Positions 20,324 to 48,205 of a DNA stretch of 64,000 nucleotides are shown here, piece after piece. The notes beneath the pieces are model-generated. The model searched no databases, was not told where the DNA came from, and saw only the letters and a program-made list of their open reading frames with translations. Position 1 is the stretch's first letter; each line of letters opens with the position of its first letter. The DNA comes from Chara braunii (lineage: Eukaryota > Plantae > Charophyceae), in the NCBI GenBank assembly GCA_003427395.1, contig BFEA01000042.1:2604271-2668270 (forward strand), in the 5' to 3' direction. Made by a program: the position numbers and the translations under genes.

Positions 20324-23300
20324 TGCCTTCTTTTTCACTACGAAAGACGGCGTTGGCCTCTTTTTAAAATCGGTAGAACTACCGACCTTACAATTACGTG
20401 CGTGCGTCCACGTAAGAAACCGTTTCCACTTCCACGACTTTCCTAGACGGGATCGTGCTTTCCTGGAAAGAAGTGGGATCCCAAATTTTGCCTAAAAGTG
20501 CCCTTCCTATAAGAATTGCGATCTGACCCTCACTCTCGGTTTCCACCACTGATCTCGAAATGTGAAAAACGAGAGTGAATCTTCGCCAGAACATGGAAAC
20601 ATACAACTCCATGATTTTTTTATTTTTTTTTAAGGTTTGCATTTATTACCATTGAACACTCGGAGGCCGGGAATCCTCCACAAACAACACGGAAGACTCT
20701 GGGGCTGTGGAACGGGAATACAGGGGCCAAGTGGGATAAAGGGGCTGACAATAACGCAGAGACCCTAGGGGAGACACGTGCTGACAACAACCCAGTTTCT
20801 TTTTTTTTTCCTCTTTTTTTTCCCTTGAAGTTATCAGATTTCCCGACCTATGCGTGTCATCCTTGGGGCCTCGTGGCGGTGCATCTTTCCATGTTGTAGC
20901 AGAAGGCTCACTCTCGTTTTGCCTGGCTCCATTGCTCTCGAAATGTGCAAAACGAGAGTTAATCTTCCTGTAGAACAAGGAAAGATAGAGCGCCGTGATT
21001 TGTGTCTTTTGTGCATGTCAAGAATATTGGAGGAAGGCCCTCTGTTTTTTATTTTTGTTTTGTTTTGTTTTTTGCTTTTATTTTTTTTGTTTAATAAATC
21101 TAGGCCTTGTCGCATGGCTGGCCACGACCGCGATGCCTTGGCCACATCCGAGGTAAAAAAAAAAAAAAAAAAAAGCATCTCGTCGCGTGGCTGGGGTTGT
21201 TACCTGGAGATTGGGGATATACAACCTTATTTGGGTTGTTTTCAAAGAGTGCAAAATGAGTTGGACCTGGCACTAGGGTTGGAACTGACGATCAAAGAAG
21301 GCCAGGACTTTATGTCTTGGTCCAATCGAAGCCAGAAGCCTGCCGCAATTGCCGGTTCACTGCACAGGATTGACGCGAATTCGTCCCTACGGTATAAAAT
21401 ACCAGGTCAAGTGATGCTTCGCAAAATATTTTATCAAAGGAAGGCCTACCCTATGGAATTGTTCCTAAGGGTGCTGGAAAATTTTGCAGTCAAAAGAGGC
21501 CCGGTCTTGAAACAGACCGCGGACCTTTTGAAAAACTTCCCGTGACTTCGACGTTTGACGAAGAAGGGTAGTAGTATTAGTAGTATATATTTAGTATCGG
21601 CCATATCCTCTCACAACAGCTAGACTTCAGTGGTCGTCGCTATTCTAGCACGACCATCGCTCAATTTTGTCGGGATCGATGGTATGGTCGGCGGATCATA
21701 GGGTTTGATGGTGTGAAGGTGGGAGAAGACGGGATGCGACGTCCGTAATGCTACTTTATTCAATTTGACATCCCGCTTCGCGGGGCATTGCTGTTAAACT
21801 GTCTTTGTGAGACTGTGTACATGAGTTGTGGTTTGTGTGCACTGTTGTTTTTGCCCCTACGCAAGCGCTTGATCATAACCGTTGAAGGATCGCTGCTCTG
21901 ATTGGTGGTCAAGATTTCGTCGATGTGTGAGAAGAAGACCGAGTACGATTGTCCTCGGGGATTGACTCACAAATCTGAAGACTCTCCTATTCATTGCTAC
22001 CTTCTCCGACAACATGGCCTCTCAACTTCTCAGATAAAAGGGAGGGGAAACCAAACCCTTTTTCTTTTCTTTGGCCAGGGAACTTCAGATGAGTAGTTGT
22101 ATACCTGCAAAACAACAAGTCCCTCAGACAATAACTATGCCTAGTAAGCAGACCCTCTGACAACCAGTAGTCAAGCATTACCAATAAAATAAAACTCATA
22201 AATTAAATAATAAATAACAAATAATAAAATACATAACAACTCTTCACTCCCAAGATTTATTGATTGCCTTGTTTTTGGCCCACCACTGGCCAGGAATACC
22301 GGACGTCCCGTCAGTCTGATATACCTCATTCGGCCCGCCTCAGGCCAGGACTAGCCAGACCATTTGTCTTGACATCCCCTTTGACCTGCCTCCAGGTCAG
22401 GACCAACATACCCACTACTCGAGTATGACAGCCCTTTGGCACTCTTGCCAGGACGCCCAGACTATAGCGGGTCTGGCCACCCTATGACAGTAGACGTCCC
22501 GTCAGTCAAACTGTCCCGAACCCGGATTTGAACACTGCGGTCAAAGACCGACTCACCTACCAGTTTTTGGCCAAGGGCGCTGGCTGCCCCGCCCAGATTT
22601 TTGAACGTGGGACCCGGTCTAACCACAGTTCCAGGCTCTGGCGAACCTCACTGGATTGCATCCTCTGACTGCGGTAGGGTTCCAGCCGACGCCTTTCAAC
22701 CTCATAGGCCAGACTCTCGGAGTCTTAGCCTCAGCTGACTACGGAATTCGACACTCGCGTCGGGGACCTGCTGACCCCACCAGATTGCAACCTATTGCGG
22801 TAAGGCTCTGGCTGGCCCCGACAATCAACGCATCCTTAGGTTAGAGAAGAAAACCCCCAAGTACAAAACAAACAGGCAAGCATATCACGACCCACACAAA
22901 AGCAGACTGACCTCGCCCCATAACAGGACAAACATTTCTCAAGAGAGACGTCCCATCAGTCTCAAGAGCACTGAACAGCAACATGATAACCAGCACCAAG
23001 CCCTTACAGGAGACCTCCCTTTAGTCTCAAGAAGGAGGCTTAGTGCTGGTCCCATAAAGGTCCCTTCCCTTAACTGGGAATTTTTTTTTTTTTTTTCCAG
23101 GAGACGTCCCGTCAGTCCCAAGGAAGTACTGAAATGTTGATCTCGTAAAGGTCCCTTCCCTCATCCGAGCGAAGAACGGCCCTTAGCCAAAGGCACGAAG
23201 TTCCTTTACTAACCACTCTCGGTCAAGTAAAGCTGAACTTCTTTATGCCTGCCCTCATCTGAATCTCTTGGATGAACATTTTACTCAGAGACTCGAAGTC

Positions 23301-23829: not shown

Positions 23830-25010
23830 GTTTATTGTAGGAATGAGATCTGGGTCTCTGAATATAAACTTACGAAGTCTAGAGCCTGATACCATGTCAT
23901 GAACCCTGGATCCGTCCATTTATGAAATCTCATAAACCTTGTCTTCCGCCTCTCCTGTGATTCTGTAAGGACCAAACCATCTAGGCTCCAACCTTTTAGT
24001 TCATTGTGTCTCAAGAGAATTGTCAAACAGAAGGACAACATCTCCAATCTTCAATTTCTCTTTTCTTATACATTTTCTTTTTCCATCTTTCTTGGTCTAA
24101 CAGCCTGCTGGATGTCATCCTCTCTGCAGCATCCATCACTGCCTGATCAACTTCTGATATTTGTCTCATTCTAATCTGAAGAAGCTCTGAGATAGAATAG
24201 TCTCTGTCACTTTCTTCACTTGACCACGTCTTAACAATACTCTCAATAGGTCATGTAGCATATCGGCCGTACCACAGAGTAAATGGTGCATAACCAGTAG
24301 TTCTCTTGACCGTGACGTTATCAGCGTACACAGCAACTCTTAAAACTTTCGGCCAGTTACTGAGAGTTCCCTTACACGACTTGGCCAGTGAATTTTTCAA
24401 AGTTTTGTGGCCTCTTTCAACAGGTGCATTAGCTTGAGAGTGGTAAGTAGTCACATACCGAATTCCGACACCCAGTCTGAGTGTGGTTTTTCTGACAATT
24501 TCATTTCTGAACTTTGATCCTCTGTCTGAAACAAATTCTCTGATGAAAGGATATCTAAGATAGACTTCTTCTATCCAGTCAGCCACCTGTTCGACTGTCT
24601 TCCTTTTCAGAGTTTTTACCTCAACATATCCAGAGAAATTATCTCTAATGTTTAATATGTATCTCATCCCACCCTTGCCTAGTGGCATAGTAATGAGATC
24701 CAAATGCACTCTGCTACCTGGCTCTACCAGGATAGTAGGGAATAGGGGTTCGATCATTCTTGTGGTAGACCTCTTCTGACATAACACACATGATTTACAA
24801 TATCCGAAAATCATGTCTCTCATGCCAGTCCAGAAGTAGAGTTTGACAGTCTTGGAGTAGGTTTCCTCAGCAGCCCTGTGGCCTCAGCAACCCCCTCATG
24901 CAGAGCAACAATTATCTCTAACTGCCTTTCTTTACCACAGACCACCCTTAGTGGAGGTAGGCCTCCCTTACTATCCACAAAGAGATGTCATCTCTGTAGT
25001 CTGAATTTCT
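23830..25010 (-). pseudogene. Gypsy integrase
   Basis: CKSCVLC, VHLDLI, DNFSGY, VSDRGSKF, YHSQANAPVERGH. Confidence 0.92.
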
Positions 25011-25230
25011 TCTTTGAATTCTTACAATAATATTCTTTTAGCTGCTCCTTTTCCATCTTTCTGCCAATCTCTTGATAATTTTCATCATATTCTTCAAAGA
25101 AGAAAAATATTTATTCCTCCTTCTTTTCACTCTCTTCTTCTTCCTTTGAACCTGAACCTTCCCCAATCTAATGAGCAGCCACTTCTGCTACATTAACTCT
25201 AGCATACCAATCGTTTGGTTCATCTTCTTC

Positions 25231-26952
25231 TTATTTTCCCAGAATCGACTCATAAACGTGTGCGCTTGGGATTTCTCCCCAGCTGTCTCTCTCTTCTGGC
25301 CACAGACTCCACCGGTAGGAGTATGGTATTTCATAATCCTCGTCATCTTTTTCATAAAGGAAATTATCAACATAGGCAGATTTTTCAATTGTTTCATTCA
25401 CATCTTCTTCTTTTTCTCGCCACTCAATCCGGCTTAAGCCATCCGCTCTGTTTTTCTCAGTGGGGATCTTTTCCAGTTTAAAATCATATGTCCAGATGAA
25501 AGCGATCCACCTGCTGACTGTTGGATCTACCTGTTGGTGTTTTTTAATTGCACCTATCACAGCAGATGCATCAGTCCTCAAGATGAATCTCCTTCCTAAA
25601 ACGTAGTGTCTGAAGCACCTGAGGCTATGGATGATTGACAACAACTCTTTCCTGAATTGGGTGTAGTCTCTTTCTGTGGAGTTGAGGGTTCTGCTTTCAA
25701 ATCTCAGAGGTTTTTCTCTCTCATTTTCATCTTTCTGAATAAGCACTCCTCCCAGAGCAACTGGTTCTCCATCCACCTCAATGATGAAAGGTTTTGTCTC
25801 TTCATCATCATAAAATGACACTCCCAGCACTACACCACCATCTCTTAATTTTTCCTGTAATGTCTCTGCTGCAGCTTGTCTTTTATCATTCCATGCTAAG
25901 TTAGCTCCTTGCCTTACCATCTCCCTCAGAGGCTCTGCACGGGTTGCAAAATGAGGAATAAAAATCCTCCTCAATCCGCAGACTCCCAAGAAGCTCCTAA
26001 CATCTGTGACTCTTTTGAGAGGCAGAGGCCAGTTCAAGATCTTGTCTATCTTCTTGGGATCTGGGCTCCTACCCTTGGAAAAACATATGAAACCCAAGAT
26101 TACCACTTCTGGTTGGAAGAGAAGGGACTTTGGTTCACTGACAGGCATATTATATTTCTGAAGTCTCTCTAGGACCATCTTAACTCCTTCAGCATGTTCT
26201 CAGACAAACTTTCTGACTCCCCCTGCGACCAAAGTCTCATCTCTCACCAGAGGTCCTTTTACATGATTGTCATTAATATACGGACTGGTTATTTCAGGAG
26301 AAATATCTTGCATGACTTTGATCATATCCCTTTGAACCACCGCCACACCGTTAGTCCTACCCTGAGGTACCACACACATCTAGACTAGTCCCCTTGGCGT
26401 GTCCATGGCAGTCATTGGTCGGCTAGTGGGATCAACAGGGAACTAATCATAGCCAGAATACAGATCAACTAAAGAATAAATACATCGACCAGCAAAGGAT
26501 TCAGAGAGGAGATCAACATTGAGAAAACTATCTGCATCACGTACTGTCACAGAATTGAGCTCCTGAAGATTTTGTATCCATCTTAGCCCGCCCCCTGATT
26601 TCCAAAAACAAAACCAGTGGTAAGCATAAGGTCCATCAGCAGGTTCAACAATATTAGATGCAATATTTTTGTCAAGATATTTCACAACTTCTGCCTCTTC
26701 CTTCAAGGCGTACTTGGTTGGCCTATCATTCCATGGAACGTAATCAACTGTCCAAATCTTGACCGTCTTGATCATGTCCACGTCCAATCGCCCTCTCTCT
26801 TCATCATTAAAGGAGAAAGCACCAGAAAATTTCTGACACATCCTGAAGATATATTCTTTCTCTTTAGGCATGATAAACTGATCCGAGCCTATTTTCATTG
26901 TGTCAAACCTCTCTTTGGTGACCTTATTCTCCAGTTTTGTTGATTTCCTCAA
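25231..26952 (-). pseudogene. Gypsy reverse transcriptase and RNase H
   Basis: DLYSGYD; mutated YIND(N) in place of the catalytic YxDD; VRSFLG; PLRFESRTLNSTERDY; LRTD; NRADGLSR. Confidence 0.92.
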
Positions 26953-27415
26953 TGATCTTATAATTTTTTTTGTTTTTTTTCAATGCTTCATCATAATCTT
27001 TTTCTATTAAGACAGCTACTGGGTTTTTTTCACCCCCTTAGGCTTGTATTTTCTTTTTGACCGAGTGACTATTTTCCTAAAAAATGGTGAGTCGATGCAA
27101 ATCTCAATTCCATCTTTCCTCCCTTAACAATCTCTATAACTTTATTGAAGGCTTCAATTTGTCCTAATCTTCGAGTTTAGCAAGGACTTTTATCATTTTC
27201 GAAACCTAATTGATTCCCACCGAAATTTCTTCTTTTGTTTCTTGTTTTCCTACTTCCTTTAGTCTCCTAACCCTTTCAGCAGATTCTTCCCTTCTGATCG
27301 AATTAGCAGATAATTGATGTTTGAAATCATTTTTTGTACAGACCATAAAGGTCTGCTCTTGGGCGGTCTCAGGATCCTGTAAACCGATCCAAGACGACCC
27401 CTCATGACTGAAAAA

Positions 27416-28165
27416 TTAGACGGCCTCCATCCTATGCAAGAATGAAGTTCCCAAGATATAGTCATGGTCCAGATCTGACACTACAAAACCCAGTAATTCC
27501 ACAGTCATTGTTCGAACTCGGATAGGCAAATTGTCTATAAACCCTGCCACAAACAATTCCTCTGCAATATTGCACAACACGTTTTTGGCAGGCCTATTAA
27601 TAGTCAAATTACATGCCTTCATCGTTCTTTCTGAAAGAAGTACCATCTCTGCCCCAGAATCCACTAGGGCTAAAATCTTCACTTGATTAATGTGAATTGT
27701 AAGGTGCTCACATCCCATGGTTGTAAATTTCATCTTGCAACCAGGTAGTGATCTATTCACTTGGTTGGGAAAGACTGACCCCAAATAATTAACTTCCAAT
27801 TTTTTCTTCTCAATTAACTTCTTCAACTTTTTTTTCAGTTTGGGCGCTAGCGTCATTGCTTCCTTGAAAGACAGTGTCACTTCCGTTTCTTCCAGCATTT
27901 TAGTAATTACATCAGAAATCACAGTCCCATCATCCAAGTCACTCTTGAGAATAAATTTTATCTTTCTCCCCTGTTCATTTTTTTCTTGTGGGCGTTCCTG
28001 TTCAGGGTCATCAAGGATGTTAATAAGTGACTCCTTAGCCTTCTTCCTTTTCTTTTCTTCTATCATCTGCGACGTCATACGAGTTTGGTGGTTTCTCACT
28101 TCTCCAATCCTAACATTAGGTTCCATTATGAGTTCTGGGGGTAAATCGCCATGAAACGACACCAT
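27416..28165 (-). pseudogene. Gypsy aspartic protease region
   Basis: ALVDSGAE and YILGTSFL motifs. Confidence 0.88.
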
Positions 28166-28253: not shown

Positions 28254-29858
28254 TCACTTTCTCTTTTTCTTAATCTTCATCTTTTCATCATGTTTAAGAG
28301 CAAGAATCCTCATACCTCCTGGATGTCTGGGGTCCAATTTATTCCACAAATTATCACAGACATGGCCCATTGCATCTTTCTTTGCCACCCTACTCCTTAC
28401 ATCCTCCTCAAGAGGCTTGCAATAAGTAGTAGTATGACCCCCTTCGCCACAATAGTAGCAAGTAAAACTCTTCTTAGGACGTTCGTCATATTTTATTCTC
28501 TCTCTGTTTGCTCCATCACCATTCTTCCTATTCCTTTTGGATCTAGACGAATCCCCCTTCTTACCATAATTTTCGTTGTCATCATTATCGTCGTCATCTT
28601 CCTCACTTTCAACCTTTTTCTTTCCCCTGTCATCCACAGCATGCGTTGCAGGCCTTGCAGGCATAAAGTTAGCCATTACCTTTTGAAGAATATTCTCGGC
28701 AGTCAGATTGCTTCCTCTATTCATTTCATTCGCAGTCTCCCAGTCCTTGGCCAGAGTGCTAATCTGATCCAATGACCATTTATTATGAGAGACAGTAGGT
28801 AGAGATCTTATGATTGCAACCATTTCATCCCATCTGAGAGGATAGTGTTAAACTTGATTAAGAACTGTTTGTCTTTCAGTGTCCGTAAAGTTCGTCAAAA
28901 ATATATGGCATCTCTGAGCTTCATCCAAATAAGAAATTTTTCTTGCTGCTCGGATAAAAGTATGAAAAAAAACATTAAAAGTGTCAGATTTAGCTCTTCT
29001 GATGTTGAGTAAGTCCTTAGTTGTGGTTGGAACTAAATCTTTCTCAAATTCTTTTTTCAGTCTCTCCTTGACCTCTTCTCATGTAGTGGCACCTTCCATT
29101 AGTTCCTGAACGGCCAGTCTTGAGTTAGTATCACAATAAGATAGAAGATGCTTTAGCCGTTGTTTATCTGTTCAGCCATAACATAATCCAAATAACTCAT
29201 ACTCGTCCAGGAAGTCATTACACCACAGGTCCTCCTCACGAAAAAAACCTCGGGGTATCGGTAGCGCCGTTTCACGACGGCTACCGATAGCACAGCGTGG
29301 AAAACCGGGCGGGCCTCCGTACGAAATTTCGTGAAAAAAAATTAAAATAAATCGAATCGGCACGGCAATTATTTCACCGTCAAATTGATTTTTTTTTTTC
29401 TGATATTTTTTCCTGAAAAATCACGACCTTATCTACAGACCCTCAAATTTTCAGACATTTTGGTGTATTACTCTGAGCACGAAAAATCGGCAAAGTTGCC
29501 GCTTGAAAAATGGCGGGATTCGGACCCGTCGGCCTCCGCACAACCCGGCGCCTCAGTACGGTCGCCGCCCCTCTGTACAACCCGGCCCTAACTCACCGGT
29601 ATCAGGGGTTTTCGGTGGCGGGGGGACCTGTGGTTTAACTTGGGGTCCTCTGAAGTAGGAAATTCTCTCATCTGGTCTTTTTGCTCTTGCAATGTCTAAC
29701 CCTCCTTTTATAGTATCAACCCTTTCAACCAACTCCCGTATAACTCCAACCAAGACCTCTTCATTGGTCCCTGCTGATATACTCGATTTTCCTCGCCCTG
29801 CCATCTTGACCATAAATCTTTCCCGGATATTCTCTTCTCTTTCTGTCACTCTTATCAT
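28254..29858 (-). pseudogene. Gypsy gag, interrupted by a MITE
   Basis: Removing 29221-29635 restores SYFRGPQVNDFLDEYELFG; zinc knuckle-like CYYCGEGGHTTTYC. Confidence 0.85.
29221..29635. mobile_element. Tc1/mariner-like MITE in gag
   Basis: TIR CACCACAGGTCC / GGACCTGTGGTT; TA TSD; excision restores the gag frame. Confidence 0.88.
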
Positions 29859-29873: not shown

Positions 29874-30425
29874 TCAATCTCTCACTTTTCTCGCAAAAGA
29901 TACAGGCTCGTTTCTTTCTTTTCTCGTCTGCTCTGCCCCTTGAGAGTTCTGTACATATAGGGTATAAGCAATAATGGATTGGGTAGTGATCAAGGGCAGT
30001 GCAATCCTTCTTAGCCTTCCAATGTAATCTTTAATCAACTCTCCCTCAGCATCCCTGCTCAGTCTTCTGTCATACCCCTTTATAGTACCCCGAATCATAA
30101 AATATTGAGTCAGGTCTATAATCTCATAATCAAATTGCATCGTTTACAGCCCACTATTGATCCTTCTTGCAAGAGAGACCCGTTCCCGAGAAATGTGGTA
30201 TGATACTCTCTCAGTAGTCCCTACTTTCACCACCTTTAATAGATAGCTTATCTCAGTCAGGTCAGTGATAATTCTCAAGGCAGAATCTCTCATGCGATCA
30301 AAGAAAGGCTGCAAGAACTCAAGCTCGTCTAGGGTAGAAAGATTTATGTAAGAGATCCGAAGAGTCCCTTCTACCTTAACTACTTTACCTTCCAACACAA
30401 CTCCTAGTGTCAGCTGTTCAGTCAA
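29874..30425 (-). pseudogene. Additional unknown ORF remnants between the paralog array and gag
   Basis: Adjacent ORFs 30144-30425 and 29874-30140 on the element's sense strand; no recognisable motif. Confidence 0.35.
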
Positions 30426-30436
30426 ACTGGGTATTG

Positions 30437-30943
30437 CTAATCATCATAAGCAACATCTGAAAGGTAGATCTCAGGTTGGACATAATCAGGGATTTCGAAT
30501 CTGTGTTCAAAGGTACTCAAAAGTATGAATTTTATCATCACAGTGGAATCTTTTTCTCTTGCTCTACCAATCTCGGCAATGACTTCCAGCAGAGACATCT
30601 AATCTCTCCTGACTTCAAATCCCTTAGCAATCGAGAACTCAGGAAGCCTCTCATATTGTCTTACTTCTTTCCCCCATGTTACTTTTCTCTTTAACTTTTC
30701 AAGCCACTCCTTGGTTCTTGTGAGGCTGATATAAGAAAGTAGTCGTGACTTCAAGTAGTCGTCTTCCTCTTCTAGTCCTACTGGTACATAAATCCGTACA
30801 TCCAGGCTGCCAGTACTCAGGAATTTGACCACTAGGATGTGAAATACTATGGGCCCCCTTACACAAGTCTCATATCTCAGGATCACAAAAGGATTATCAC
30901 ACCCTATCACCTCATAGAGTTTATCCCTCACAGCAGTTATCAT
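30437..30943 (-). pseudogene. Accessory paralog ORF-E (unknown domain)
   Basis: NPFVILRYE...KFLSTGSLDVRIYVP...LPEFSI...RD*MSLL; one stop at a Trp position conserved in paralogs. Confidence 0.6.
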
Positions 30944-30948
30944 GACTA

Positions 30949-31440
30949 CTAAGAGTATTCTTCTTGGGCTCTCTTCACTTTCCATGCAAACTTTATCATG
31001 GTGTATCAATTGTATCTTGGGAATGTGAGTCCCCTAACAGGTGGGGACGGTATCCCAACAAAAGGTCTGACATAGGTGCTAAAGGAGAAGTTTATTCCAT
31101 TTCGCTCTAATTTTCTCTTCTCATCATGCACAAGATTCGACGCTCGTTGCCAACACGCACCTTTTCGGCTTTCGTCAAATCTCTGCTTCGGCACATAAAT
31201 CCCAATATCATATTCATCAAGATCAATAAAATAACATGTAAGAACATACAGACTGTCCTGTTCTTGTCCTGATCTCTTTATGGCTTCATACCTCACGATT
31301 TCATAAGGAATTACAACCCTACTCGGTATAGAATTCAGGGAATTCAGCAGCTTGTCTGATTCAGCCTTACTCAACCCTTCATGGCCTCTTATCAGTCTAA
31401 GCTTAGATCTCTCTCTCAAGGGTACATAGCGTCGACGCAT
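30949..31440 (-). pseudogene. Accessory paralog ORF-D (unknown domain)
   Basis: LNSLNSIPSRVVIPYEIV...FIDLDEYDIGIYVPK...CW...PSPPV...N*YTMIKFAWKVKR. Confidence 0.7.
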
Positions 31441-31925
31441 CAGACTCTTTGACCTCTTTTCACTTTCTAGGCAAACTCAATCACCGCAAACCAATCATCT
31501 TTGGATAAATTTTTATCAGGCAAGGGAGGAGTTGAAAATCCCTCGAAGACAGTAAATCGAGTAGATCCAGTGAAACACTTGTTCTCTTTCTCAAGCCTCT
31601 CTCTCTCTTTCAATACAACTTCTTCAGCAAATTCTCAACATCTTCCATATAATGCTTCAGCACTTCTCTCCTTTGGGACATAAATTCTTACATCATACAC
31701 GTCTTGTTCCGTAAAATAGAATGTCAGTACATATAATTGTTCCTGCTCCCATCCGCTCTCGACCATCTCATATCTGACAACTTCATATGGGAACACCTCT
31801 CTCTTACTTAAAGTGTTCAGTGACTTTAGGAGACGCCCTACTTCCTCTTGACTTGGGCCTGAACCTCTGCCGAATTTCTGCCTTCTCTGTCTGATTTCTT
31901 CTGGTGAAACCTCTTTAGTTCTCAT
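31440..31925 (-). pseudogene. Accessory paralog ORF-C (unknown domain)
   Basis: LKSLNTLSKREVFPYEVV...FTEQDVYDVRIYVPK...C*...TPPLP...DWFAVIEFA*KVKR; stop overlaps the ORF-D start (TGATG). Confidence 0.7.
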
Positions 31926-32328
31926 GATCACCGTTTATTTTCTCCCTTGTCAATACCATGTTGATTATCGGCAGCCAGTTAGTCTCATCACAATAGCTGT
32001 CAGGTATAGGAGGAGTCGGAACAGTCTCATATGTCACTTGCATTAAACCTCATTCCACTTTCTTCTTCTTCTTAATTAATTCTGCCTTTTCATCATAAAG
32101 AGACTGGATTGCAATTTCCCATAACCAGTTGAAGGTCTCACCGTCGTCACAGTCTCCCTTCTTGACATAGGGACGGATATCATAAATATCTCCCTCCAAG
32201 AAGCGAGCCAGCACTACGCTGATGGTCAAATTGCCACAACGGTAGACCCAACAATACTCATATTGATAGGGAAATATTCCTTTGATAGTTACTCTTGAGA
32301 ACTCTCTCAATGCATCAGAAGTAAGCAT
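31915..32328 (-). pseudogene. Accessory paralog ORF-B (unknown domain)
   Basis: GIFPYQY...FLEGDIYDIRPYVKKG...WLW...PTPPIP...NWLPII; 11-nt overlap with the ORF-C start. Confidence 0.65.
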
Positions 32329-33264
32329 CCTTGATGAAATCCTCGAGCTCTCGATTCTTCCTTTCTCTTCTCAGTGTTCAAAAGACATCATAGATTCATG
32401 AGGCATACCTGAATTCAAGCCTGATTCTCTCCAGTCAATAATATCAGTCTCCTTCTCCAGTCAAGTGTGGTACCTCACACAAGAAGGAAATAAGACACAG
32501 TTAGCAGCAGTGACTCTCAAGAGAATCGAGACTCAATAAGAATAATAAGATCAATAGGAAGCTCACAACGTTGTCAACAGTTCTCACGCCATAATCAAAG
32601 CTCAAAGATGATGATGACCAGGTTCGTTCCGAAGACGAAAAATTTTTCATGTCCCCGACAATGGCGCATTTTTCTCGCACTTTTTCCAGCCGGGCCTCTT
32701 CGGGCAACCGGAAAGCCAATTGACTGTCACGCAGGATTTTGCTTGTTGTTGCATATAAATGAAATAAATTAAATAATGCAAATCCCTTCCTGTTGTGTGC
32801 GTCTGGCTTCGAGCGAGACCCTTCAATTGCGGTCTTCGCCGGTCCCCGGTCTTAGGAATCTTTTATTTTGATTCGGAACAGCAGAGAGTTATCCAAATAA
32901 TAACCATAAAATTATGGGGTGTTATGCATGCATCAATTATGTCAATCTGACTTTGAGAACTGTGACAGAATCATCCAAGGAGACAATCATCAGGCAGAAC
33001 AATGCAAGAAGCAAGACTGACTGACTCGAGCAACGACAGGAGCAATTGAATGAGGGAAGAATGATGACTCATAAAAGTCTCAGGGAGTACATATGAAGGA
33101 GAACATGACCAGCACCAATCAAGAGTCCTCATTCAACCCTCTGAACTTCTCTCTGTCTCTCACTTCGCTATTCGTAGTTTGGGCTTCTTACCATGTCTCC
33201 GTACTCTCTGAGGTTGTGACTTCTGAAGGTACAGCCACCTGAAGCCCACACATTCCAGACACTT

Positions 33265-33828
33265 TCAGCCAAGTCCCATGATACGGAAGTCAAGCATGAC
33301 ACAAAATTCCTCCCATAGTGTGGGGAGATAGGGCTGAAAGAAAATACCGAACTCAGAGGGTTCGGACACCGCCTCATAATCAATCACTGCATGTGATCTG
33401 TATCTCTTGACCAAGTCCACCAGACCGCCCCAATAAGAGCCATCAGTAAGATAGTAGGGGATAGGAGGTTTGGGGTAGTCTGTTAACAGCTTAGGACCAA
33501 AGTTATAGACTAACTTTGTTTTCCCCTGGAGTCTCTCCGCTTTCCACTGCACATACCCTACCGCTGCGGCCCACACTGCGTCAAAATGAGGGTGTGTCTC
33601 ATTCCCTTTCTTCAGAAAGATCCGCAGATCATTGACTGTGCCCTCAGCGAACTCAGTATGGGCGATGAAGATAGGCAGATCTTCGCGCTTGAACCCATCA
33701 ATACTGACATACCTGTAGGGGAAGCTCTCCCTAGCAGCAATCAGGTTGAGGCTGTCAAGGACTGACTGGTCTACTGAGATGGGGTTGATCTCTCTCATAT
33801 GATTGATTGAATAATCACTTTCTGGCAA
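33265..33828 (-). CDS. Accessory paralog ORF-A (unknown domain)
   Basis: LDSLNLIAARESFPYRYV...FAEGTVNDLRIFLKKG...VW...PKPPIP...YWGGLV; open for 187 codons. Confidence 0.65.
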   Translation of the reverse strand: MPESDYSINHMREINPISVDQSVLDSLNLIAARESFPYRYVSIDGFKREDLPIFIAHTEFAEGTVNDLRIFLKKGNETHPHFDAVWAAAVGYVQWKAERLQGKTKLVYNFGPKLLTDYPKPPIPYYLTDGSYWGGLVDLVKRYRSHAVIDYEAVSEPSEFGIFFQPYLPTLWEEFCVMLDFRIMGLG

Positions 33829-35520
33829 AGGAAGAGAAAACTATGTTTGATTGATTGATGTCCGCTGCTTGAGTGTCTTTTGAACTCAGTTTTGAATGCT
33901 GCTTCAGGTTACCGTTTTCTGGCTGCTGGCTTCTAAAGGTTGTTTCCTGACTGCAGTTCTCTGATAAGAATGTTGATGAGACTACACTATAAACCAGATG
34001 CTTGAAATAGATGTTGGTCAGCTGCTAGTTAACTGTTGCTCAAGGACTGAAAGGTTGTTGGTTAATTGTTGCTTGACTGAGAGAACATGATACCGTTGAG
34101 ATTATTGACTGGAGAACTGAATGCTGCCGAGATTACTGACCCTGCACGGAGCTCACTAAGTCTTCTTTAAGTCCACTGAGTCTGTTCTGAGCTCACTGAT
34201 CTTGTATAGAATTCACTGGTTTTTATTCTGAGCCATGATTATTGTTCTACGTACAGACTACCGCTCTGAGCGTTGAAAACCGCACCGAGTACTGGAAAAC
34301 TGCTCTCTAATTTACAGTTTCCGGTTGCTGCCTTGATTGCTGATTAGATTGTTGTCTGTTTATCGATCTGATTACTGCTTGATTGCCAATTTGGATGTCG
34401 TCTGGACACTGTCTGAATACTGTCTGAGTGTTGTTTGAACGCTACCTGGATGTTGATTGACTCCGGAGAATTGTTGAACGAAAACTGATTAGGATACCAT
34501 TGAGCATCAACCAAGTAAAAGCTGAATTACAGTTAAATACTTATTATGCAACAACTGAGTAGCACTCAAATATTGTTCTAGGTATTGTTCTGAGTATTGC
34601 CTTGAATAATGAATACTGCTCAGGGTACTTGATACTGCCCTGAGTACTGTTTCCGAGCTCTAAATACAAAACACTGCTCCAGGTCTCGTCTGAATATTTG
34701 TCTGAGTATTGCGAGTTACTGTGTCCAGAATAATTAACTGAAAATCGAGAGCACCCGTTGCGGGAGGAGGGCTCAGTGTTGTCGTTCAAGGTTGATAAAG
34801 TTCCGCAGATGGTGGCTAGAGCACTACTGATCTCACGCAATCTTTGCCCTGGCCTGTTCCACCGTCTCCAGGGATGAACTGGTACTGTGCATCCGACCAT
34901 TAATGCCGTAGAAGTAAATCACGTACTCAATATACCTTTTACCTTTGGCCATCTCTACTGCATACCCTCTCTGAATCAGTTTATGAGTCTCCATGTCTGA
35001 GAAGGCCTCTTTCTCCCACTTTTCCCCTTTGTCCCTTACTAAACTGCACTTCACTACTAGGACCTCGTTTTCTCTCCTCTTTCCTATAATTTACCAGGGT
35101 CCGAACATCAAATAGGATAGCGAACTTGATTGACTGCACACGGCTCAGTAAGCCTTATGTGTAGAGAACGAGACTGTCCTTGGGCTCGGGGTCATAGGGA
35201 CTTAATCAGCACACTCTGGTAATGTTGAGTACTCAGACCACTAAGTATGAGTCACTCTCGTTTCGAATGAGAAAGCATGCTCTGCAACACTTTACTTGAA
35301 AGATAATCACGTTTCTCCCTCAGGACAGGGTTCAAAAAACCATGGCATATTTGTCAAATCGGCACTCTGTCACTCGCTGACTAACCCACCTGCTGAGTAA
35401 CATTTGTACTCACTGGAACCAATCATAAGTGAGCTGAAGGCGAGCTAAGTCCTTTGACTATACACCGAGCTTTTCGACCCTAAACTGAGATATCTGAGTC
35501 TATATGAAGCTGCTTAGGTT

Positions 35521-35734
35521 TATTTGGAGTTTGTCTAATTCTGGCTTGAGTTGTCTGAATCTGGTTCGAGTGATCTGATTCTGGTATGAGCTGTATGAGT
35601 CTGGATCCAGTTGTCTTAGTTTTGTTAGAGTGATCCGAATCTGGTCTGAGTTGTATGAGTCTGGCTCCAGTTGTCTGAGTTTTGTTCGAGTGATCCGAAT
35701 CTGGTTTGAGTTGTATGAGTCTGGCTCCAGTTGT
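35521..35734. repeat. 60-bp tandem repeat (about 3.5 copies) with 10/20-bp sub-periodicity
   Basis: Unit CTGGTCTGAGTTGTATGAGTCTGGCTCCAGTTGTCTGAGTTTTGTTCGAGTGATCCGAAT. Confidence 0.88.
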
Positions 35735-37530
35735 AAAGAGTGCACTTTCAACAATTTTCCGTTAGCTCTCCGCCTGCAGGGCTCGCCTCGTCACACCTCA
35801 GGTGAGTGCGAGTGTTTGATGCAACGCTCCCTTCTCAATCTTCTGCCTCTCCCCAATTTAACGCGCAATTCGCTTTAAATACGCTCTCGACATCCTCATC
35901 TCTGCACTGGCACATGTCACTAAGTTTGGGAGTGACAACTCAGAGTTTTCACCAGGATGCCCTTGGACGATTGAGCTCCCGGTGAGGTCACTTCATGCGA
36001 ATCTACTACTGAAGAGTAGGTTACTACTAGACACAAGCGTACAATCCTCAGGGGCATGTCCACAGTCTAAAATTTTCACATCAGCCCAGCTAACATGACT
36101 AACAGTTTAAAATATGATCAAACAGATTCGGGCATTCCCCCCTTCCCTTTTCTTCCTAGACTTATTTTCAGTAGACACGCTTCCTCCTCTCAATCAGAAG
36201 ACGGTGTTGTTGTTGCAAATCATATCCAGTTAGTGCCTAAGCCATCACCGAATACAGTTCCTACTTGACTAGTAACAATACAGTCCTAGCGTCAGGTACT
36301 GTTCATCCCGTATTGGATGTCGCTGATAGCGTTCCGACAAAAGGATAGCCTTGATCTCGTAACTCAGAGCCCAAGCTACCCGGAGACCTCAGTCCGGACC
36401 ACCTAACGATACGGGTGAAAACTTGATGACTAAATCAACTAGGCATGCTTTGCGAATCAGGCGGGGAGGACACGCAAGTAAAGCACGTTCTGGTTCACCG
36501 TTTCTGAGTTGCTCACTCTATCTGGCACAACTTTTGTAATAGCCCCCTTCTCTCTTAATTAAGCAACGTTGACTAGAGGAGCAATATGATGAGAGCTAGT
36601 TAATCGCCATCAAGCAGAAACTTAGCAAGAATGTAGGAAACTTTTCTAAGTGCTAACTTCCCTCTTCCCATTTGTTTCAAGGCGGATAAAATTATGACAC
36701 AATTAGTGATTCATCCCCACAATTCACTTAGCAGAACAAATCCGTTTAGTCCGTTCAAGTGCTAATTTGCTTACTCATGTTGCCATGAGCTTGCACATTT
36801 GTCACTTCAGCAAGTGCATGTCCTCGGATGTCTGCCCGCCCACACATGTTCATGCAAGATTGTACGACGATGTATACTAAAAACTAGGGTCCAGGTTACA
36901 CTCGTGAACTCATGCGGTGGAAGAAGAAGGGGAACATGTACCACCAAAATCACTCGTCAGACTCAGAAACACGATACAAGTTAGAACCTTGATTTTTCTC
37001 ATTTCTCTCAGCAAATGTCAACACCTCTTATGATTTCAGAGCACACAGACACAAAACCTCTTACCCTCTTTGTATCTCGTTGTCATGAATCGGTCTGACT
37101 ACCTTCGAATACTGTCACGTCCAGCCGTTGAACCTAAGCTGAGAGTTTACCACTCGCCTAACTCCCTTATTTTCCCTGAGTGTCTAGCGCCAATTATTGT
37201 CCGATCTTAAGATTCTCCATCCATCCATAACTTACTCATGTCATATCTTTACCGTTTTGATCTCTCATAAAAAACGGTTTTGCTCAAAGAAGTCATTCGC
37301 GCTAGCGGAATACATGATTCCCACTTATTACTAACATATGCAGCTAAGGCTTCGTTCTGCACAGTTACTCTGGAACTAAACAAAAGTCAGCTCGCTTTGC
37401 CATCACTCACGAGAGTTTTTCAACTGAAGGAGGAACGCATTTACCATGCGCAGAGCACGTCAGTATGCACGACTAGCATCGGTATGAACAACGATGTCAC
37501 TCGTGCTTCGTATAAGCAGCAATTGATCCG

Positions 37531-37593
37531 TGCTACATATGAGCGGTAATGTTACTCGTGCTACGTATGAGCGGCAATGTTACTCGTGCTACG
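37531..37593. repeat. 28-bp tandem duplication
   Basis: TGCTAC(A/G)TATGAGCGG(T/C)AATGTTACTCG x2. Confidence 0.75.
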
Positions 37594-40500
37594 TGTCGTC
37601 CTGTGCCCGCATGTAACCACCTCGTGAAGATGTGGAGTCAGCAGCTTGTGCACACCATATTTCGCTATTTCACGCCCCTCTCTTTTGAGACCTCACCCCT
37701 TCGTCAGTGACAACGTCATCAAAGGCAATGCTTGTAATCCACGCTTGCCCAGCAAGCTGGCCCACTATTCTTCTCAGCAAGTGCGATAGATGACGCGCGT
37801 CCCGCGAAAAACTGTAGTGACGTCAACCGTACTCAGCGAGTTCGTACCTTTCCCACTCGCCCTGTCTCTTCTTTCATTGACTCTCTTCTAGCTCCCCCTG
37901 GCTGCCACGTATGGCCCGTGTACCGCGCGCGTCCCGATCACTCACTTCCCTCGTGCACTCGCACCGTGATTACTTAGCGAGTGAGCGAGAAGCTCTCCGA
38001 AACAGGTCACTCTGGCGAAAAACGCAAGAAGATACGGTACCTAATCACTTGCCGAGTGACAAAAAGGAAACTCCTGAGGCAGGTCACTCTGGCGCGGCAT
38101 TGAAACTCACCATGGCTTAACAGACACTAGATGCCTTGAGCGAGAGGAGGCAGCGACTGACGTCAACCATCTCTAACAAGGTCGTGCGCTGCTCATCCTT
38201 ACCGCTTCTCTCTCTCGTTGACCTCTGTTTTCTTCTCCGAGAGGTGCCACACCCTTGAGCACTACTGTCGTAACCGCCTCCCCGCATTGCCCCCTCTTGG
38301 CTACTCTCTCGCACTCCCTCTTCACCAAGGTGCGCCGCTTTGGCTTGCACACGTGCTGACTTCTGAGACCCTCCTTGTCGACCCCACCGTTTCTTCACAC
38401 CTTTACGCATGTCCCTTTCCCCTGTTTTGCTTCTCACCCGTCCCACGGCCTCTGGGCGTCAGCTGTCGTGAGTTGGCCTCGGGTCCCTCTTCCACCGGCT
38501 TCGCGGCTCGGTGATGCCTCCAGATCTTGCCTGGTCTATTCCAGGACCTGAGGTTTGTCTCCCGGTCTGCGTCACTCATCTCACTCTCCCCTCCTGAGTC
38601 TCTGTCCTGGTGGACCTGTTCTAGGTCCGCTGTGTCCATTGAGGTCTCGGTTTCGTGGTAAGCCACCGTTATCCTTGTCGTCACTCCGTCCCGTCTACAG
38701 CGTCGCTCCTCTCGGTCTCTCGCCTCCGAAATCGAGTCCTGCAGATTCGGGTTAGTCCGCATCTCCCCTTCTCTTGCTCCCTCCACGTTGATCTTCAGTA
38801 GCAGTTCATCTCCACCGTCATAGTTGAGTATAACCATGATCCAGGGCCCTTCCTCGGACACGGGCTTCCAACCGGCCTGGTGATACCAGTACCCACCCTA
38901 TAGCCATGCAGTGTCATAGTCGGGTTCTCCTCAGTAGCCAACACCAACGCTCAACCCGTACTATCCTACACGTGGGACTACCAAACAGACTAAGCCCCGA
39001 CTATCGAGAAATCTAGGCTTCAACGTGTATCACTGCTTGCATATGCAGAGCAGCGGCACCCCCTTCACTCGGGAGCCAAAACCATCCATCACAGAATAGC
39101 CACACTCCAACACTCTGAGCGGTAGTAGATAACTATCGCCCTTTTCCCTCGTCACTCCCCTTTTTCTTTTATAGGATTGTCCCCTGCTGCAATCCCTGCG
39201 CTCTAGTTGATGGACTCGAATTAGTCATTTTCAACTCTTTTTAGATCCTGAAACTTTAAAAGGTCCACGATAATAAAATAAATTGAGACTAAACAATTTA
39301 AGAGGTGCCCGAGTTCAGGACTCAACAGTCACAGCATCGACTTCCGTTTCCAGCCACCGAAAACCCTTCTCTAGCCAAAAAAAAAAAAAATAATCCACAG
39401 ACCTGACGCGACGGTCCCATAACGGGATATCGACGGATCTTCGACCCTCTTCAAATTGTATCATCGGCCTACCTCTATCAGGTGCTCGTGTCCGATGGCA
39501 AGGAGGGGGCTTATAACCCTCCTCAGGGGTGATAAGCCTCCAACCAATGCGGTCGCGGGTCGGCCCTCTTTTGGGGTTCTACCTCGAAGCGCCCGATCGG
39601 GTCTCCCGACCGTCGGCACAAAAATAACAGGCTCGATCAGTCAGGGCCGCAGACTGTAGCCACACTCGAAACTCTAACCGTTGAGCTTCCCACGAAGTAA
39701 CCAGAACGAAAGGAAAAACTGCAATTGAATCGGTCTGTTAATAAAGGTAATAATAATTATAATAATAATAATAATAACAACTACAAAAGGAAAAAGGTGG
39801 CGATTCCAATTTCCTTCGCGCCGCAGCTCTGTCTGAATAGTAGTAAAAAGTCCAAGCAGGTCCCGCTATATCAAGCCTCTAATACGGCCACAGATCCTAC
39901 TACGCGGAGCTTAGACGAGCAGACCTGGCACAAGGGATATTCAAAAGGCTAGGCCTGCCTAGGCCGCAATACCACCGTCTGAACTCGAAACCAGAGCCGT
40001 TGATCTGCCTACGACGTGCTGGGACCCAAAGAAAAAGGGAAATCCCCGCCTAAAAAACTGGTAAATCGGCAATAATATTTATAAATAACAATAATAATAA
40101 TAAAAGAGAAGGAGAAAACCCAGTCGATTCAGCAAACAACCGTCGCTGGATTATTCCGGATTAGAACAACGGTCGTCATCCTCGTGCTGACCAGGCATTC
40201 CGCCTTCTTTTCTTTTGTTTTATTTTCTTATTCTACCCCTACCCCTCTTATTCAAGTTTTTCCCGTGTACTTGACCCATAACTCTGTACAGGGATGTTCT
40301 ACTCGCAGTTGAAAAGACTGGGTCAGTCTTCCCACTTCCGCGTCCCAGGGTGAACCCGACGGCTACCACGGCCACAGGCCGGTTGTGCTCTGCTGTACAG
40401 CAGGGCGCCGAGCCTGCGTGGACCAATGGAAGTCCTTTGGCGCACCCCTTTTGCTGAGGGCTACGCCACCGGGACCTGTCCACGCCGAGAAACGATCCAG

Positions 40501-41736
40501 GTACCAGAGCAGGAAACTGGTACTATGAAGGGACTTGGCCAATAGGAGGGCCGGGACACCGTGCCCTCCGACAACGTGCGTGTCATTGCACGCGCCCAGA
40601 TCCCGATTGCGCACTGATGCGCGCAGGTCCTCCGCTTAAGCGCGTATTTAAACACTTACCTACGCCTGGCTATGGTGGCGAGTGTGTCCTTTCGCTCCTC
40701 CAGGTTTCCCTAATCTCCAGCCGCCCCTCCCGTGGTCCACCCAATTTGCGTTCCATAGGCTCCCTCGCTCCTCAACTTTCTCTACCGAGCTCCTCTCGTG
40801 CGCCTGCACGCGCGCAAGTGGGAACTCCTCCCTTGTGCGCCCGTTGTACGCCTGTCCAAAGTCCCCCCCCTTGAGCCCGGTTGGGCTTATATACTTTGGT
40901 GCCCTTCTTTCTTGGGGTGCCACAACCCTCGTCACGGTGTGCCCCGGGGCTGCCGACAAGTTCCTGTGCCCTGGCACCATGGCTTCCCCGAGCCTGTACC
41001 CGGGCCTGTTTGGGCCCCCGAAGGGTTTTCAGTGAAGGGGGCCTTTTTGTCAGGTACCGGGCCTTTTGGAGTGCCCTGGTACCAAGGCTCATTCCAAACC
41101 TAGTTCCCAAGCCTGCCCAAGCTCTCGTGGTCCCCACACAGAAAAGTACCGGGGCCTTGCCAATTTGCGTAGGGCCCAGACACGGATTTAATAATTCTAT
41201 GGCCCAAGGCCCTTTTTCCCAGCCTTAGGTCCGCAGATCCCCTTCAGCTTTTTACTCACGGCCCGAATGTCGAGGCCCCTAGAGCGCCCAAGCAACGTTT
41301 TCTCCTCTCTATTGATCCCATGATGAACTCCGGTGTCGACCGCTGCTTAGTTCGCCCGAGGGCTCGCCTTAGAGCTTAGCGCCCCCTTTTGACTGGTCCA
41401 TTGCCTGACATTTTTTCTATAAGTCACGGTCTGGCCTGTCCGTTCTTATCCTTGTCCCGGGTCTCTGGTGTTCTCTTCTACAATCGTCATGCTTTTATAC
41501 TTTGAGCGTGAATGTCCTTTCTCGTGTCCATAAAAGAATGCTCACTCATCCTTTGTGGTTCACTTTCTTCCTGACGCGTCGTCCCGGATACCCGCGACAT
41601 GAACCTGACATCACAATCCCTTGATGTCGGTCAGACCCCATCTGGTAAATTTGGTAAATTTGGTAAATCTGGCACCCTGCAACTGTTATCTTCAAGGGAG
41701 TGAAGGGCGGTGTAAGGCTGGAGCCGCCCGACAACA

Positions 41737-41755: not shown

Positions 41756-41948
41756 ACGTCCCCGGCGAGCCATCTCGGTATATGAAGGAAAATAGAGAAG
41801 AAAGAAATGTTGACTCCTACCAATCAACCTAAGATTATGCTCACTACTTCCGTCAAGTTTTTTTCTCTCGTTTCTTTTTCTCGCTTCACTTTTTCTTAAT
41901 CATCTTCCTTTTGACCCCTAATCGTTTCTTGGCTTTTCGTCGCCTCTT

Positions 41949-43869
41949 CTAGCGGTAGTGTTTATCCTCGCCTGTGTTTATGACCATCGCACCTTTAATG
42001 ACCTCCATAACTTTAAGTTTCCTCTCTCGCCTCAGCGTGGCTGACTTTAAGGCCTTTGGTCTCGTTTCCTTTACGACTTTCCTCCAGCTGTTTCTGACGC
42101 CTAAGATTTTCTCTCGCCTCCTTTTCGTAGGTCTTTTGGAGGTTTTGCCTCTTTCGAAAGTGAATGACTTAGGCCCCTTTGTGTCTTCCATCGAGAGTTC
42201 TTTAGAACGTTCTTTAGTTTTCCTTCAACCTTCTCTTTCCCCTTGTCCTTCTTTAAGATAAAGTGGAACTTGTATCGCCTCTCCCCCGATTCCCTAAACA
42301 CCTTCAAGCGTGCACCAGACACGGGCTTTTTCCACACAGCTCCGTCTAGTTCCTCGAGCAAGTAAGCGCCCCATTCTAATCTCTTGGTTACGAGGTAGGG
42401 ATCCATCCACCGGTTCGCCAGTTTTCCTCACCACGTCCTTTCTAGAGCAGAATCGTAGAGTAAGACTAGGCTTCCAGTAGGTATACCCTCTCGTTTAACT
42501 CATAGGTTTTTATCCCATCTTTCCTTGTGCTTTCCCCTCTAGACTGTCAAATTTTCAATGCCTTCCAGGGTGCTATCCTCCAATTTTTCAGCTACTTGCC
42601 TAATTCTGGCTCATAGGAACTGCTCCCTAGTCGATACCCCTTCCACGTTAATCCTTATCCACGAGTCCATATGAAATTCTGTGGGTAAGGGACGTTGCCT
42701 CCTGAACCATAAGGTATAGGGGGGTTACCCAGTGGTTGCTCGGACAATAACGTTATCCGCTGACACCATGAATCTCAAATACTTTGACCACTTCTTATTT
42801 TTCCCCACACACCATTTGGCAAACACGTTTACTAGGGATTGATGTCCCCTTTCTACAGGGGCGTTAGTCTGAGGATGGTATGTTGTGGACAAGGATACTC
42901 GAATCCCTGCTTTTTGGAGCAAGGTTTCGACTTCCTTAGCCATGAACTCCGACCCCCTGTCCATGACGATCTTCCCGACATATCCATATCGAGTGATATA
43001 TTCTGTCAGATACTCGTTGACTACTTTCCCCAAATTCTAACGCAACGCCCACGCTTCTACGAAACCAGTTAGGTCGTCTCTGATATCCATGATATAATTC
43101 ATTCCTCCCTCACCCTTGGTCATCTTGACTAAGTCCCCGTGAGCTTTCTGTCTTACCGCGGTCGGGTAAGAAGGAAACAACGGTTCCTTGTATTTCACTA
43201 CCACTTTTTTTTTTACATTTCACGCATGTCTAGCCGTAAGACTCTACATCTCTATAGAAGTCATCCCACCAGTAGAGATTCCTAACCTTCTCAAAGGTCC
43301 CTTTTACTCTATGTCATCCAACGATCCCATCGTGAAGCTAAAAAATTATCTCCTTCTGTTCTTCCTCATCGCACACTACCCTCATCGGCATACCACTCTT
43401 AGGTGGTCTTTTAAAAAGGTGGTCTGCCTTAAGACAATACTGCTAAACCTTTTTTCTGAGTTTATCATCGACCTCATCTCTCCTAAGAGATATCGCCCTA
43501 TTTGGTGGTGCTTACCGGTATAGAGGTTCTCTAGGAACCGAGTGGCACCACTAGTACTAGGCTCTATCTTTACCGAGCCTATTTCCATCTGTAAAATTTT
43601 ATCGACCCCTCCAGATGATCTCAAGTCCCCTTCTTCTAGGGTGATCCGCGACAGTCCATCTGCCACTGCGTTCTTGGCCCCAGATATGCGCTCAACCACA
43701 TAGTCGAACATCCATATGTGCATAAGCCACCTGGTTATCGTAGGGTCTGTCAAAAAGAAATCATTTTATAATACAGCAACTACTATCGTAGGATGAACCC
43801 GCAAAACGAACCTTTGTTCGTAAATATAATGTCTGAAAACGTTCAAGCAATACAACACCCCAAGAACTT
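41949..43869 (-). pseudogene. Gypsy 2 RNase H C-terminal part and integrase
   Basis: TRWLMHIWMFDY...NAVADGLSR; VMDRGSEF; YHPQTNAPVERGH; GAYLLEELDG...VSGARLK. Confidence 0.9.
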
Positions 43870-48061: not shown

Positions 48062-48205
48062 CTTTGTTTTCTTCTTTTTTTCAAGCCAGTTGCTCAGCTA
48101 GGAGAGGTGATAAGAGCACCCCCTCCTAGCTGGCTTCCTGGTTGCTCCAGTCTATTGGCGGGGAGCTACACCTGCAGGAAAGCGGGTCCAAGAATACCCT
48201 CCATA
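48062..48205 (-). mobile_element. Short retroposed LINE/SINE tail fragment
   Basis: Minus strand GGACCCGCTTTCCTGCAGGTGTAGCTCCCGCCAATAGACTGGAGC...GCTCTTATCACCTCTCCTAGC plus an A-rich end. Confidence 0.7.

Follow-up and report, generated by a model that had tools for sequence, protein, structure and literature searches.

Positions 30437 to 33828 of a 64,000-nucleotide (nt) stretch of the Chara braunii genome (contig BFEA01000042.1, positions 2,604,271 to 2,668,270; hereafter the window, in whose coordinates positions are given unless another sequence is named) hold the greater part of a 5′ cassette of accessory genes carried on the minus strand by a Ty3/gypsy long terminal repeat (LTR) retrotransposon. 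LTR retrotransposons are taught as gag–pol machines with at most one odd extra open reading frame (ORF). The family to which this element belongs has retained at least seven additional cistrons, of which five are ancient paralogues (units A–E), under what codon comparisons indicate is selection of polymerase strength, and it adds at least two protein families that have confident predicted cores and no known relatives. A preliminary description of the sequence had proposed a retrotransposon-borne multigene cassette. In agreement with this, a collinear second copy of the element, on C. braunii scaffold BFEA01000053.1 (locus L002), keeps the units, their order and their place between the 5′ LTR and gag, and each unit bears the mark of purifying selection in its own frame. 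We regard it as very probable that the cassette is real and conserved.

Five diverged copies of one domain

The five units lie on the minus strand. Unit A (33265..33828) is an intact 187-codon ORF comprising the domain and a 40-residue C-terminal extension. It alone is intact, and units B–E together carry five in-frame stops, one or two each. Unit B (31915..32328) has a TGA at 32050–32052, where L002 has Trp; unit C (31440..31925) has a TGA at 31635–31637 and a TAG at 31467–31469; unit D (30949..31440) has a TGA at 31006–31008; and unit E (30437..30985) has a TAG at 30599–30601. The start of E is probably a conserved ATG at 30985 rather than position 30943, as given in the preliminary description; the five units were otherwise located where that description had placed them.

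To examine the relationship of the units, we used a profile containing no window sequences and no E-type rows, and searched it against the 1616 six-frame segments of the window. This outside-only profile matched A (E = 1.6e-36), D (3e-34), B1 (3e-27), C1 (3e-23), C2 (3e-14), B2 (5e-11) and E1 (1.4e-10), in which B1, B2, C1, C2 and E1 are the stop-free pieces of units B, C and E, and the next best match had E = 0.1. Profile searches gave no match to further units in the A–B spacer, in the cistrons F and G, in the putative leader ORF Z or in the ORF within the LTR (all described below). The five-fold paralogy is real and, within the window, limited to this array. In pairwise BLASTP comparisons, C1 and D share 53% identity (79 bits), whereas the pairs other than C/D score 21–36 bits (A–B1 36, A–C1 33, A–D 31, B1–D 28 and C1–E1 25), and the paralogues are strongly diverged, at ~20–30% identity.

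The alignments show the common pattern that had been reported for the five ORFs, consisting of an L..L helix, FPY, a D-[LIV]-R-I-Y-V strand, a Trp, P-x-P-P-x-P and a further Trp, and both the profile matches to all five units and the pairwise scores (21–79 bits) bear out their similarity. The P-x-P-P-x-P motif and the Trp in the last helix are conserved across the domain. The isoelectric points of the units range from 4.8 to 9.8, with net charge differing between units, and C and D have basic tails plus Arg/Gly-rich N-terminal extensions. The earlier count of five ORFs stands in that five units are homologous, but not in that only A is intact and two more cistrons, F (30144–30425) and G (29874–30140), belong to the row. 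These two separate E from the gag ATG at 29858, and the array is thus not directly upstream of gag, as had been stated.

In a maximum-likelihood tree, the A units of the window and L002 fall together with two further A-type copies from Chara (support 100/99), and the two E units with each other (100/100); the tree also recovers a C/D-type clade (99/99), inside which window C falls, and a B-type clade (89/83); L002 D was absent from this tree. The units thus pair with their L002 counterparts, and the duplications therefore predate the split of the two element lineages, after which, as the tree indicates, all of the paralogues were retained. This supports the serial duplication suggested previously, and the tree and BLASTP scores together uphold the impression that C and D are close, that A is far from B–E and that E is the most divergent.

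A second copy keeps the cassette

The L002 copy has the order LTR, A, B, C, D, E, F, G, gag, pol, and its identity to the window copy is 71–75% (~72%) for DNA and 52–74% for protein. In L002 coordinates, A lies at 46360–46908 (54% amino acid identity to its window counterpart), B at 47838–48249 (60–67%), C at 48236–48693 (69%), D at 48726–49204 (52%), E at 49141–49710 (62%; an open 189-codon ORF), F at 49725–49994 (69%) and G at 50004–50267 (74%). They are followed by gag from 50283, and then by protease, reverse transcriptase (RT), a nested insertion, RNase H and the 3′ LTR.

Selection on the units

The preliminary description had suggested computing the ratio of nonsynonymous to synonymous substitution rates (dN/dS) across copies of the element. 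For the window versus L002, protein-guided codon alignments yielded low values, 0.14 for A–E (757 codons) and 0.136 for gag–pol (874 codons), which are rough in absolute terms owing to saturated dS. Protein guidance can bias such ratios, and a protein-blind nucleotide alignment served as a control. In this alignment, the ratio of the proportions of nonsynonymous and synonymous differences (pN/pS), pooled over A–E, is 0.28 in the true frame and 1.01 and 0.98 in the off-frames, and individual units have true-frame values of 0.20–0.38 (unit A, 0.24–0.32). Given an in-frame value of 0.28 against about 1.0 off frame, matching gag–pol, A–E are therefore real protein-coding genes, which purifying selection has constrained no less than the polymerase. 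ORFs that occupy the same site and show gag–pol-like conservation, as expected of genuine additional ORFs, were found in two full copies plus fragments.

The 940-bp A–B spacer (32329..33264, minus strand), with pN/pS of 0.65–0.73 in all three frames, is conserved DNA without coding signal. Its length is kept in L002 (46908–47838), and it may contain a cis-acting element, such as a promoter, splice site or packaging signal. Within the spacer, a block of ~130 bp (32755–32886) reaches tblastx identity of up to ~80%.

Cistron layout and junctions

The cistrons from B onwards are tightly packed. C, whose ATG is at 31925, has its first 11 nt inside B, C and D share a 1-nt stop–start overlap (TGATG at 31442–31438 in the window, TAATG in L002), and the conserved E ATG at 30985 lies inside D, giving an overlap of 37 nt. 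The E/F junction reads TAATG in L002, and the start of F is lost in the window (ATA at 30432–30434). In both copies, F and G are joined by TAA, 3 nt and ATG, and the stop of G is followed after 12–15 nt by the gag ATG. The changes of frame are likewise the same in both copies, at +1 from B to C and −1 each from C to D, D to E and E to F. Because these frame shifts, the stops at unit ends and the ATGs at unit starts are conserved in both copies, we favour the interpretation that A–E, F and G are separate cistrons, each with its own start and stop. On metagenome contigs, an intact B-like ORF (L004) is followed by a 29-nt spacer and then by a C-like ATG (L003).

Stops and starts close enough for coupled termination–reinitiation are found at C/D in both copies, at E/F in L002 and at F/G, with its 3-nt gap. 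Across B–G, the window contains 61 ATGs against 52 ± 7 expected, and L002 contains 58 against 51. We also considered leaky scanning of the type described for rice tungro bacilliform virus (RTBV) or for green algae, and this lack of ATG depletion in the cassette argues against it (PMC5902531, PMC11291117).

A second paralogous family and an ORF inside the LTR

Cistrons F (30144..30425) and G (29874..30140), both on the minus strand, represent a second domain type. They are paralogues, mutually 26–27% identical and unrelated to the A–E domain (hhalign probability 0.1%), and their pN/pS values of 0.20 (F) and 0.16 (G) are the lowest in the cassette. As judged from the conserved stops and starts at their junctions, F and G are two more cistrons and not the start of gag. 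Neither has detectable homologues: nothing related to G came up in a word-indexed search among proteins 0.55–1.75 times the query length, and an F/G profile gave nothing significant against PDB sequences.

A further conserved minus-strand ORF of 152 codons (LTR-ORF, 38403..38861) lies inside the LTR. It is homologous to exon 1 of the Chara gene model P0007 (L001 10001–10522) and to L002 43191–43520, and its pN/pS versus L001 in a nucleotide alignment is 0.28 in frame and 1.49 and 0.96 off frame; Pfam contains nothing that matches it. On inspection and in hhalign, the LTR-ORF lines up with strands 2–4 of the A–E domain, without statistical support (probability 0.3%).

Domain family, predicted fold and relatives

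The preliminary description could not assign the domain to a family, and this is upheld by Pfam, a PDB sequence search, two AlphaFold models and Foldseek. No Pfam family matched A, B1 or D at E ≤ 1, and across 23 aligned members there were four isolated single-member Pfam matches, all far below gathering scores. A profile search of PDB sequences with A–E gave a best E of 0.77, nothing significant. AlphaFold runs for unit A (7 sequences) and for the intact C-type protein P0001 (23 sequences) predicted the same topology, with core predicted local distance difference test (pLDDT) scores of 80–98 (80–90 for unit A). The predicted core of ~100 residues, in genes of about 135–190 codons, begins with an N-terminal helix, continues with three long antiparallel strands and a long helix, and ends with a fourth strand; it is followed by a low-confidence P-x-P-P-x-P linker and then by a Trp-containing C-terminal helix. 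Passing these models to Foldseek, as had been suggested, produced no significant fold match: against the PDB, both models had best E values of 0.01–0.03 with a template modelling (TM) score of about 0.3, and against the viral database BFVD the best match had E = 3e-3 and TM 0.36. The best Foldseek matches, which include GNAT acetyltransferases, RavZ, EEP nucleases and adenain (E ≥ 3e-3, TM ≤ 0.43), were rejected as homologues.

Among 1.84 billion representative proteins, an HMMER profile search picked out nine relatives, comprising five C. braunii gene models and four short metagenome ORFs, all four from assembly ERZ27272674; every species-named relative is C. braunii. This length-free scan takes precedence over a length-limited word-indexed search with A, which found no match among proteins 0.55–1.75 times the query length. 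Scans of JGI metagenomes and IMG/VR with the C/D-type alignment detected no relatives. The metagenome relatives include an intact B-like ORF of 139 codons (P0005; L004 22–441) and an intact C-like ORF of 161 codons (P0001; L003).

In the five Chara models (P0004, P0006, P0007, P0008 and P0009), the domain is part of chimeric gene models with exons tens of kb apart, and four of the five also carry RT. Fusions of the domain to RT or other sequence were rejected for these models, as the exons are spread tens of kb across nested transposons. In P0008, one unit is joined to a Mutator-like transposase match that is itself weak (E = 0.0016), a join that probably comes from chimeric annotation. Other Chara families carry fewer units: there are two in L005/L007, the A type alone in L001 and L006, and two units ahead of another protease–RT gene at L002 1298–2248. 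The two tandem units of the distant L005/L007 family, one of which is the unit joined in P0008, lie at L005 16746–17758 and L007 16919–17929.

Interpretation and alternative readings

We read the whole as a polycistronic accessory cassette that serves the element's own replication, which on balance seems to us the probable account. The cistrons would be read one after another from full-length element RNA by coupled termination–reinitiation, a mechanism suggested by the tight packing (a 37-nt overlap at one extreme, a 15-nt gap at the other) and by two UGAUG/UAAUG junctions; spliced subgenomic RNAs would be an alternative route. We put this mode of expression at roughly even chances. Because each paralogue is individually conserved and the order is fixed, the proteins would not be spare copies but would each have a place of their own in a single set. 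Their most likely roles would be in particle or RNA handling, or in the recruitment of host factors through the proline-rich motif, and we assign them to the element's own cycle only tentatively, at somewhat less than even confidence.

Several observations weigh against this account. The cassette is known from sequence alone, just two full collinear copies were compared, and all of the copies seen at full length show decay. The saturation of dS makes the absolute substitution ratios rough, and neither fold nor sequence matching (Pfam, PDB, Foldseek against PDB and BFVD) provides a biochemical lead. As for expression, the 11-nt B/C and 37-nt D/E overlaps are awkward for simple reinitiation, no UGGGA motif of the calicivirus type (termination upstream ribosomal binding site, TURBS) occurs within 100 nt upstream of the overlaps, and reinitiation is not known from LTR retrotransposons (PMC5902531).

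Instead of belonging to the replication machinery, the units may be counter-defence or host-manipulation factors, for instance suppressors of RNA silencing, diversified by duplication for several host targets. Their strong divergence (~20–30% identity) and the variable number of units between Chara families would suit such a role, as would a proline-rich motif of a kind that could bind host adaptors, and both RTBV P4 and the transactivator (TAV) of cauliflower mosaic virus (CaMV) suppress silencing (PMC5902531). However, orthologous units are conserved like gag–pol, with no raised dN/dS at the whole-gene level, and none resembles a known suppressor or defence family in Pfam or BFVD; we consider this reading, the main rival, unlikely. 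Less likely still is that the element is itself an infectious virus-like retroelement, or derives from one, and that its extra cistrons are viral genes serving transmission from cell to cell or host to host, which would make it a counterpart in the Metaviridae of the multi-ORF genomes of Caulimoviridae. Although eight or more accessory ORFs, one of them in the LTR, and a caulimovirid-like packing with fused stop–start codons (PMC5902531) would be in keeping with this, as would the movement-factor role considered in the preliminary description, no env-like, transmembrane, 30K movement-protein or TAV-like match was found and IMG/VR viral contigs yielded no relatives with the C/D-type alignment. 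Moreover, the element has an integrase and LTRs, and its copies are nested among transposons as ordinary ones are.

The separateness and the origin of the units could also be questioned. Tandem units on the same strand with almost no spacing, in two long copies that are both degraded, could be the remains of a single ORF0 polyprotein of five tandem domains, split as stops and frameshifts accumulated. Yet the same frame changes recur in both copies, between which 28% of DNA sites differ, the unit-end stops and unit-start ATGs are conserved, and the metagenome contigs hold intact, discrete B-like and C-like ORFs with a 29-nt non-coding spacer, which makes a decayed polyprotein very improbable. 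We give the least credence of all to the array being a captured cluster of host genes, or foreign DNA inserted without any connection to the retrotransposon. Transduction of host genes by LTR retrotransposons does occur (PMC7264820), but none of the nine relatives among 1.84 billion proteins is of host type, the cassette occupies the same place in the divergent family copy L002, and the domain is also present in other Chara gypsy families.

Comparison with known multi-ORF retroelements

Additional ORFs of LTR retrotransposons mostly occur singly, downstream of pol and ahead of the 3′ LTR (PMC7264820). Rice Retrosat2 and Ogre have a single 5′ ORF whose function is not known, together with very long LTRs (PMC3485330; PMC7264820). 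The Chara element resembles them in having sense-strand coding sequence between the 5′ LTR and gag and LTRs above 3 kb, and in that the 5′ ORFs have no relatives beyond the element family (PMC3485330, PMC7264820). It differs in having not one ORF but seven cistrons of two paralogous families, plus the LTR-ORF, and its units are as conserved as gag–pol, whereas Retrosat2 ORF0 is reported to be divergent. No land-plant protein matched the domain profile among the 1.84 billion proteins searched, a result to which no direct comparison with the Ogre and Retrosat2 sequences contributed. Bdelloid rotifer LTR retrotransposons capture varied extra ORFs (PMC5408684) and are similar in having fixed ORFs beyond gag and pol. 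The bdelloid ORFs lie 3′ of pol and are mostly recognizable (env-like, GDSL esterase, DEDDy exonuclease and dUTPase), whereas the Chara ORFs lie 5′ of gag and form paralogous arrays without a recognizable domain.

In its layout, the cassette is closest to the Caulimoviridae, which likewise have consecutive ORFs with short overlaps, fused stop–start codons and short spacers, and accessory ORFs ahead of capsid and polymerase (PMC5902531). Fused stop–start codons and short overlaps are a hallmark of polycistronic translation in these plant pararetroviruses (PMC5902531). Unlike them, the Chara element has an integrase and LTRs; neither Pfam nor BFVD revealed a homologue of the 30K movement protein or TAV, and ATGs are not depleted in the cassette as leaky scanning in RTBV would entail. 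UAAUG is used for termination–reinitiation in the non-LTR retrotransposon SART1 and in Cryphonectria hypovirus 1 (CHV1) (PMC5902531; PMC2699510), and the C/D and, in L002, the E/F overlaps are the same pentanucleotide. Calicivirus reinitiation likewise involves fused stop–start codons but differs in its UGGGA motif, and the other Chara junctions are longer overlaps or short gaps. In a literature search, for which many subscription papers were beyond reach, neither this domain nor an array of several paralogous cistrons 5′ of gag turned up.

A bolder view, which we think rather doubtful but worth stating, is that the element represents a charophyte 'complex' Ty3/gypsy lineage with a true polycistron, in which at least eight accessory cistrons of three orphan families (the LTR-ORF, A–E and F/G) would be translated by a stop–start relay before gag–pol, and which could mark the sort of ancestor that gave rise to multi-ORF Caulimoviridae genomes. 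A polycistron layout of that kind is otherwise known only from plant pararetroviruses. Since selection on the extra genes appears to equal that on the polymerase, they would be needed, each separately. Three matters thereby become testable: what, beyond gag–pol, a retroelement requires in a giant-celled streptophyte alga, how eukaryotic ribosomes get through a string of eight or more cistrons, and whether the multi-ORF pararetrovirus layout has a counterpart or forerunner among integrating elements.

The element and its surroundings

The window element is a degraded, 3′-truncated Ty3/gypsy copy on the minus strand, belonging to a Chara family with LTRs of 3.5–4 kb. Its pol remnants (24251..28165) show 58–74% amino acid identity to L002, and comprise protease (27416–28165; Pfam gag-asp_proteas, 2e-9), RT (26443–26952), RT/RNase H (25231–26178; Pfam RT_RNaseH, 7e-25) and integrase (24251–24823; Pfam rve, 1e-7). 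This minus-strand order of protease, RT, RNase H and integrase is that of Ty3/gypsy elements (Metaviridae) and confirms the earlier assignment. The best RT matches are all from C. braunii, one fragment being 90% identical. The gag gene (28254..29858, minus strand) starts with the ATG at 29858 and has several stops; it was recognized by its position and by a C-x2-C-x4-H-x4-C knuckle in the ORF 28254–28823, where the Pfam zf-CCHC match is weak (E = 0.38), and searches of Pfam and PDB sequences with the capsid part gave nothing above threshold. Relative to L002, a 417-bp insertion at 29220–29636 splits gag.

The 5′ LTR (36520..40590, minus strand, ends approximate, ~4 kb) was located solely by tblastx/blastn collinearity with the L002 LTR, in which L002 41767 aligns to window 40576 and L002 45198 to window 36585. 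The L002 LTRs themselves (5′, 41770–45266; 3′, 85818–89137) are 85–91% identical and start with TG. No matching 3′ LTR was found within the window, where a direct-repeat search also missed the 5′ LTR, and the copy is therefore taken to be 3′-truncated. Family similarity stops at a conserved 3′ internal region (22021..22983, minus strand) with 79% nucleotide identity to L002 83723–84624, which lies ~1.2 kb ahead of the L002 3′ LTR. With nonsense codons at Trp positions, the lost F start, the gag insertion and no 3′ LTR, the window copy is dead.

All five premature stops in B–E replace a Trp (TGG to TGA or TAG) of the other copy or of a paralogue, and L002 unit B has two more Trp-codon stops at about 48040–48050. 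In the window B–E and in L002 B alike, these are G-to-A changes on the sense strand, which, in a substitution spectrum that is unpolarised, would fit deamination of cytosines on the antisense strand or in minus-strand cDNA.

Scanning the window for Rfam families and tRNAs returned nothing. The leader between the LTR and A (33829–36500) is poor in ATG, with 28 observed against 46 ± 6 from shuffles, a depletion not shared by the cassette or gag–pol. It may contain a small 73-codon ORF of uncertain status (Z, 34833..35054, minus strand), which has no Pfam match and shows 46% amino acid identity over 83 residues to L002 45854–46102 in a single frame pair, with no conserved start ATG. The element leader also includes a tandem array with a 20-nt period at 35531–35734. 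Two other LTR pairs in the window, at 2638–10303 and 43871–49568, are 93.5% and 91% identical and ~6.9 kb and 5.2 kb apart, respectively, and mark retrotransposons neither of which has the A–E domain.

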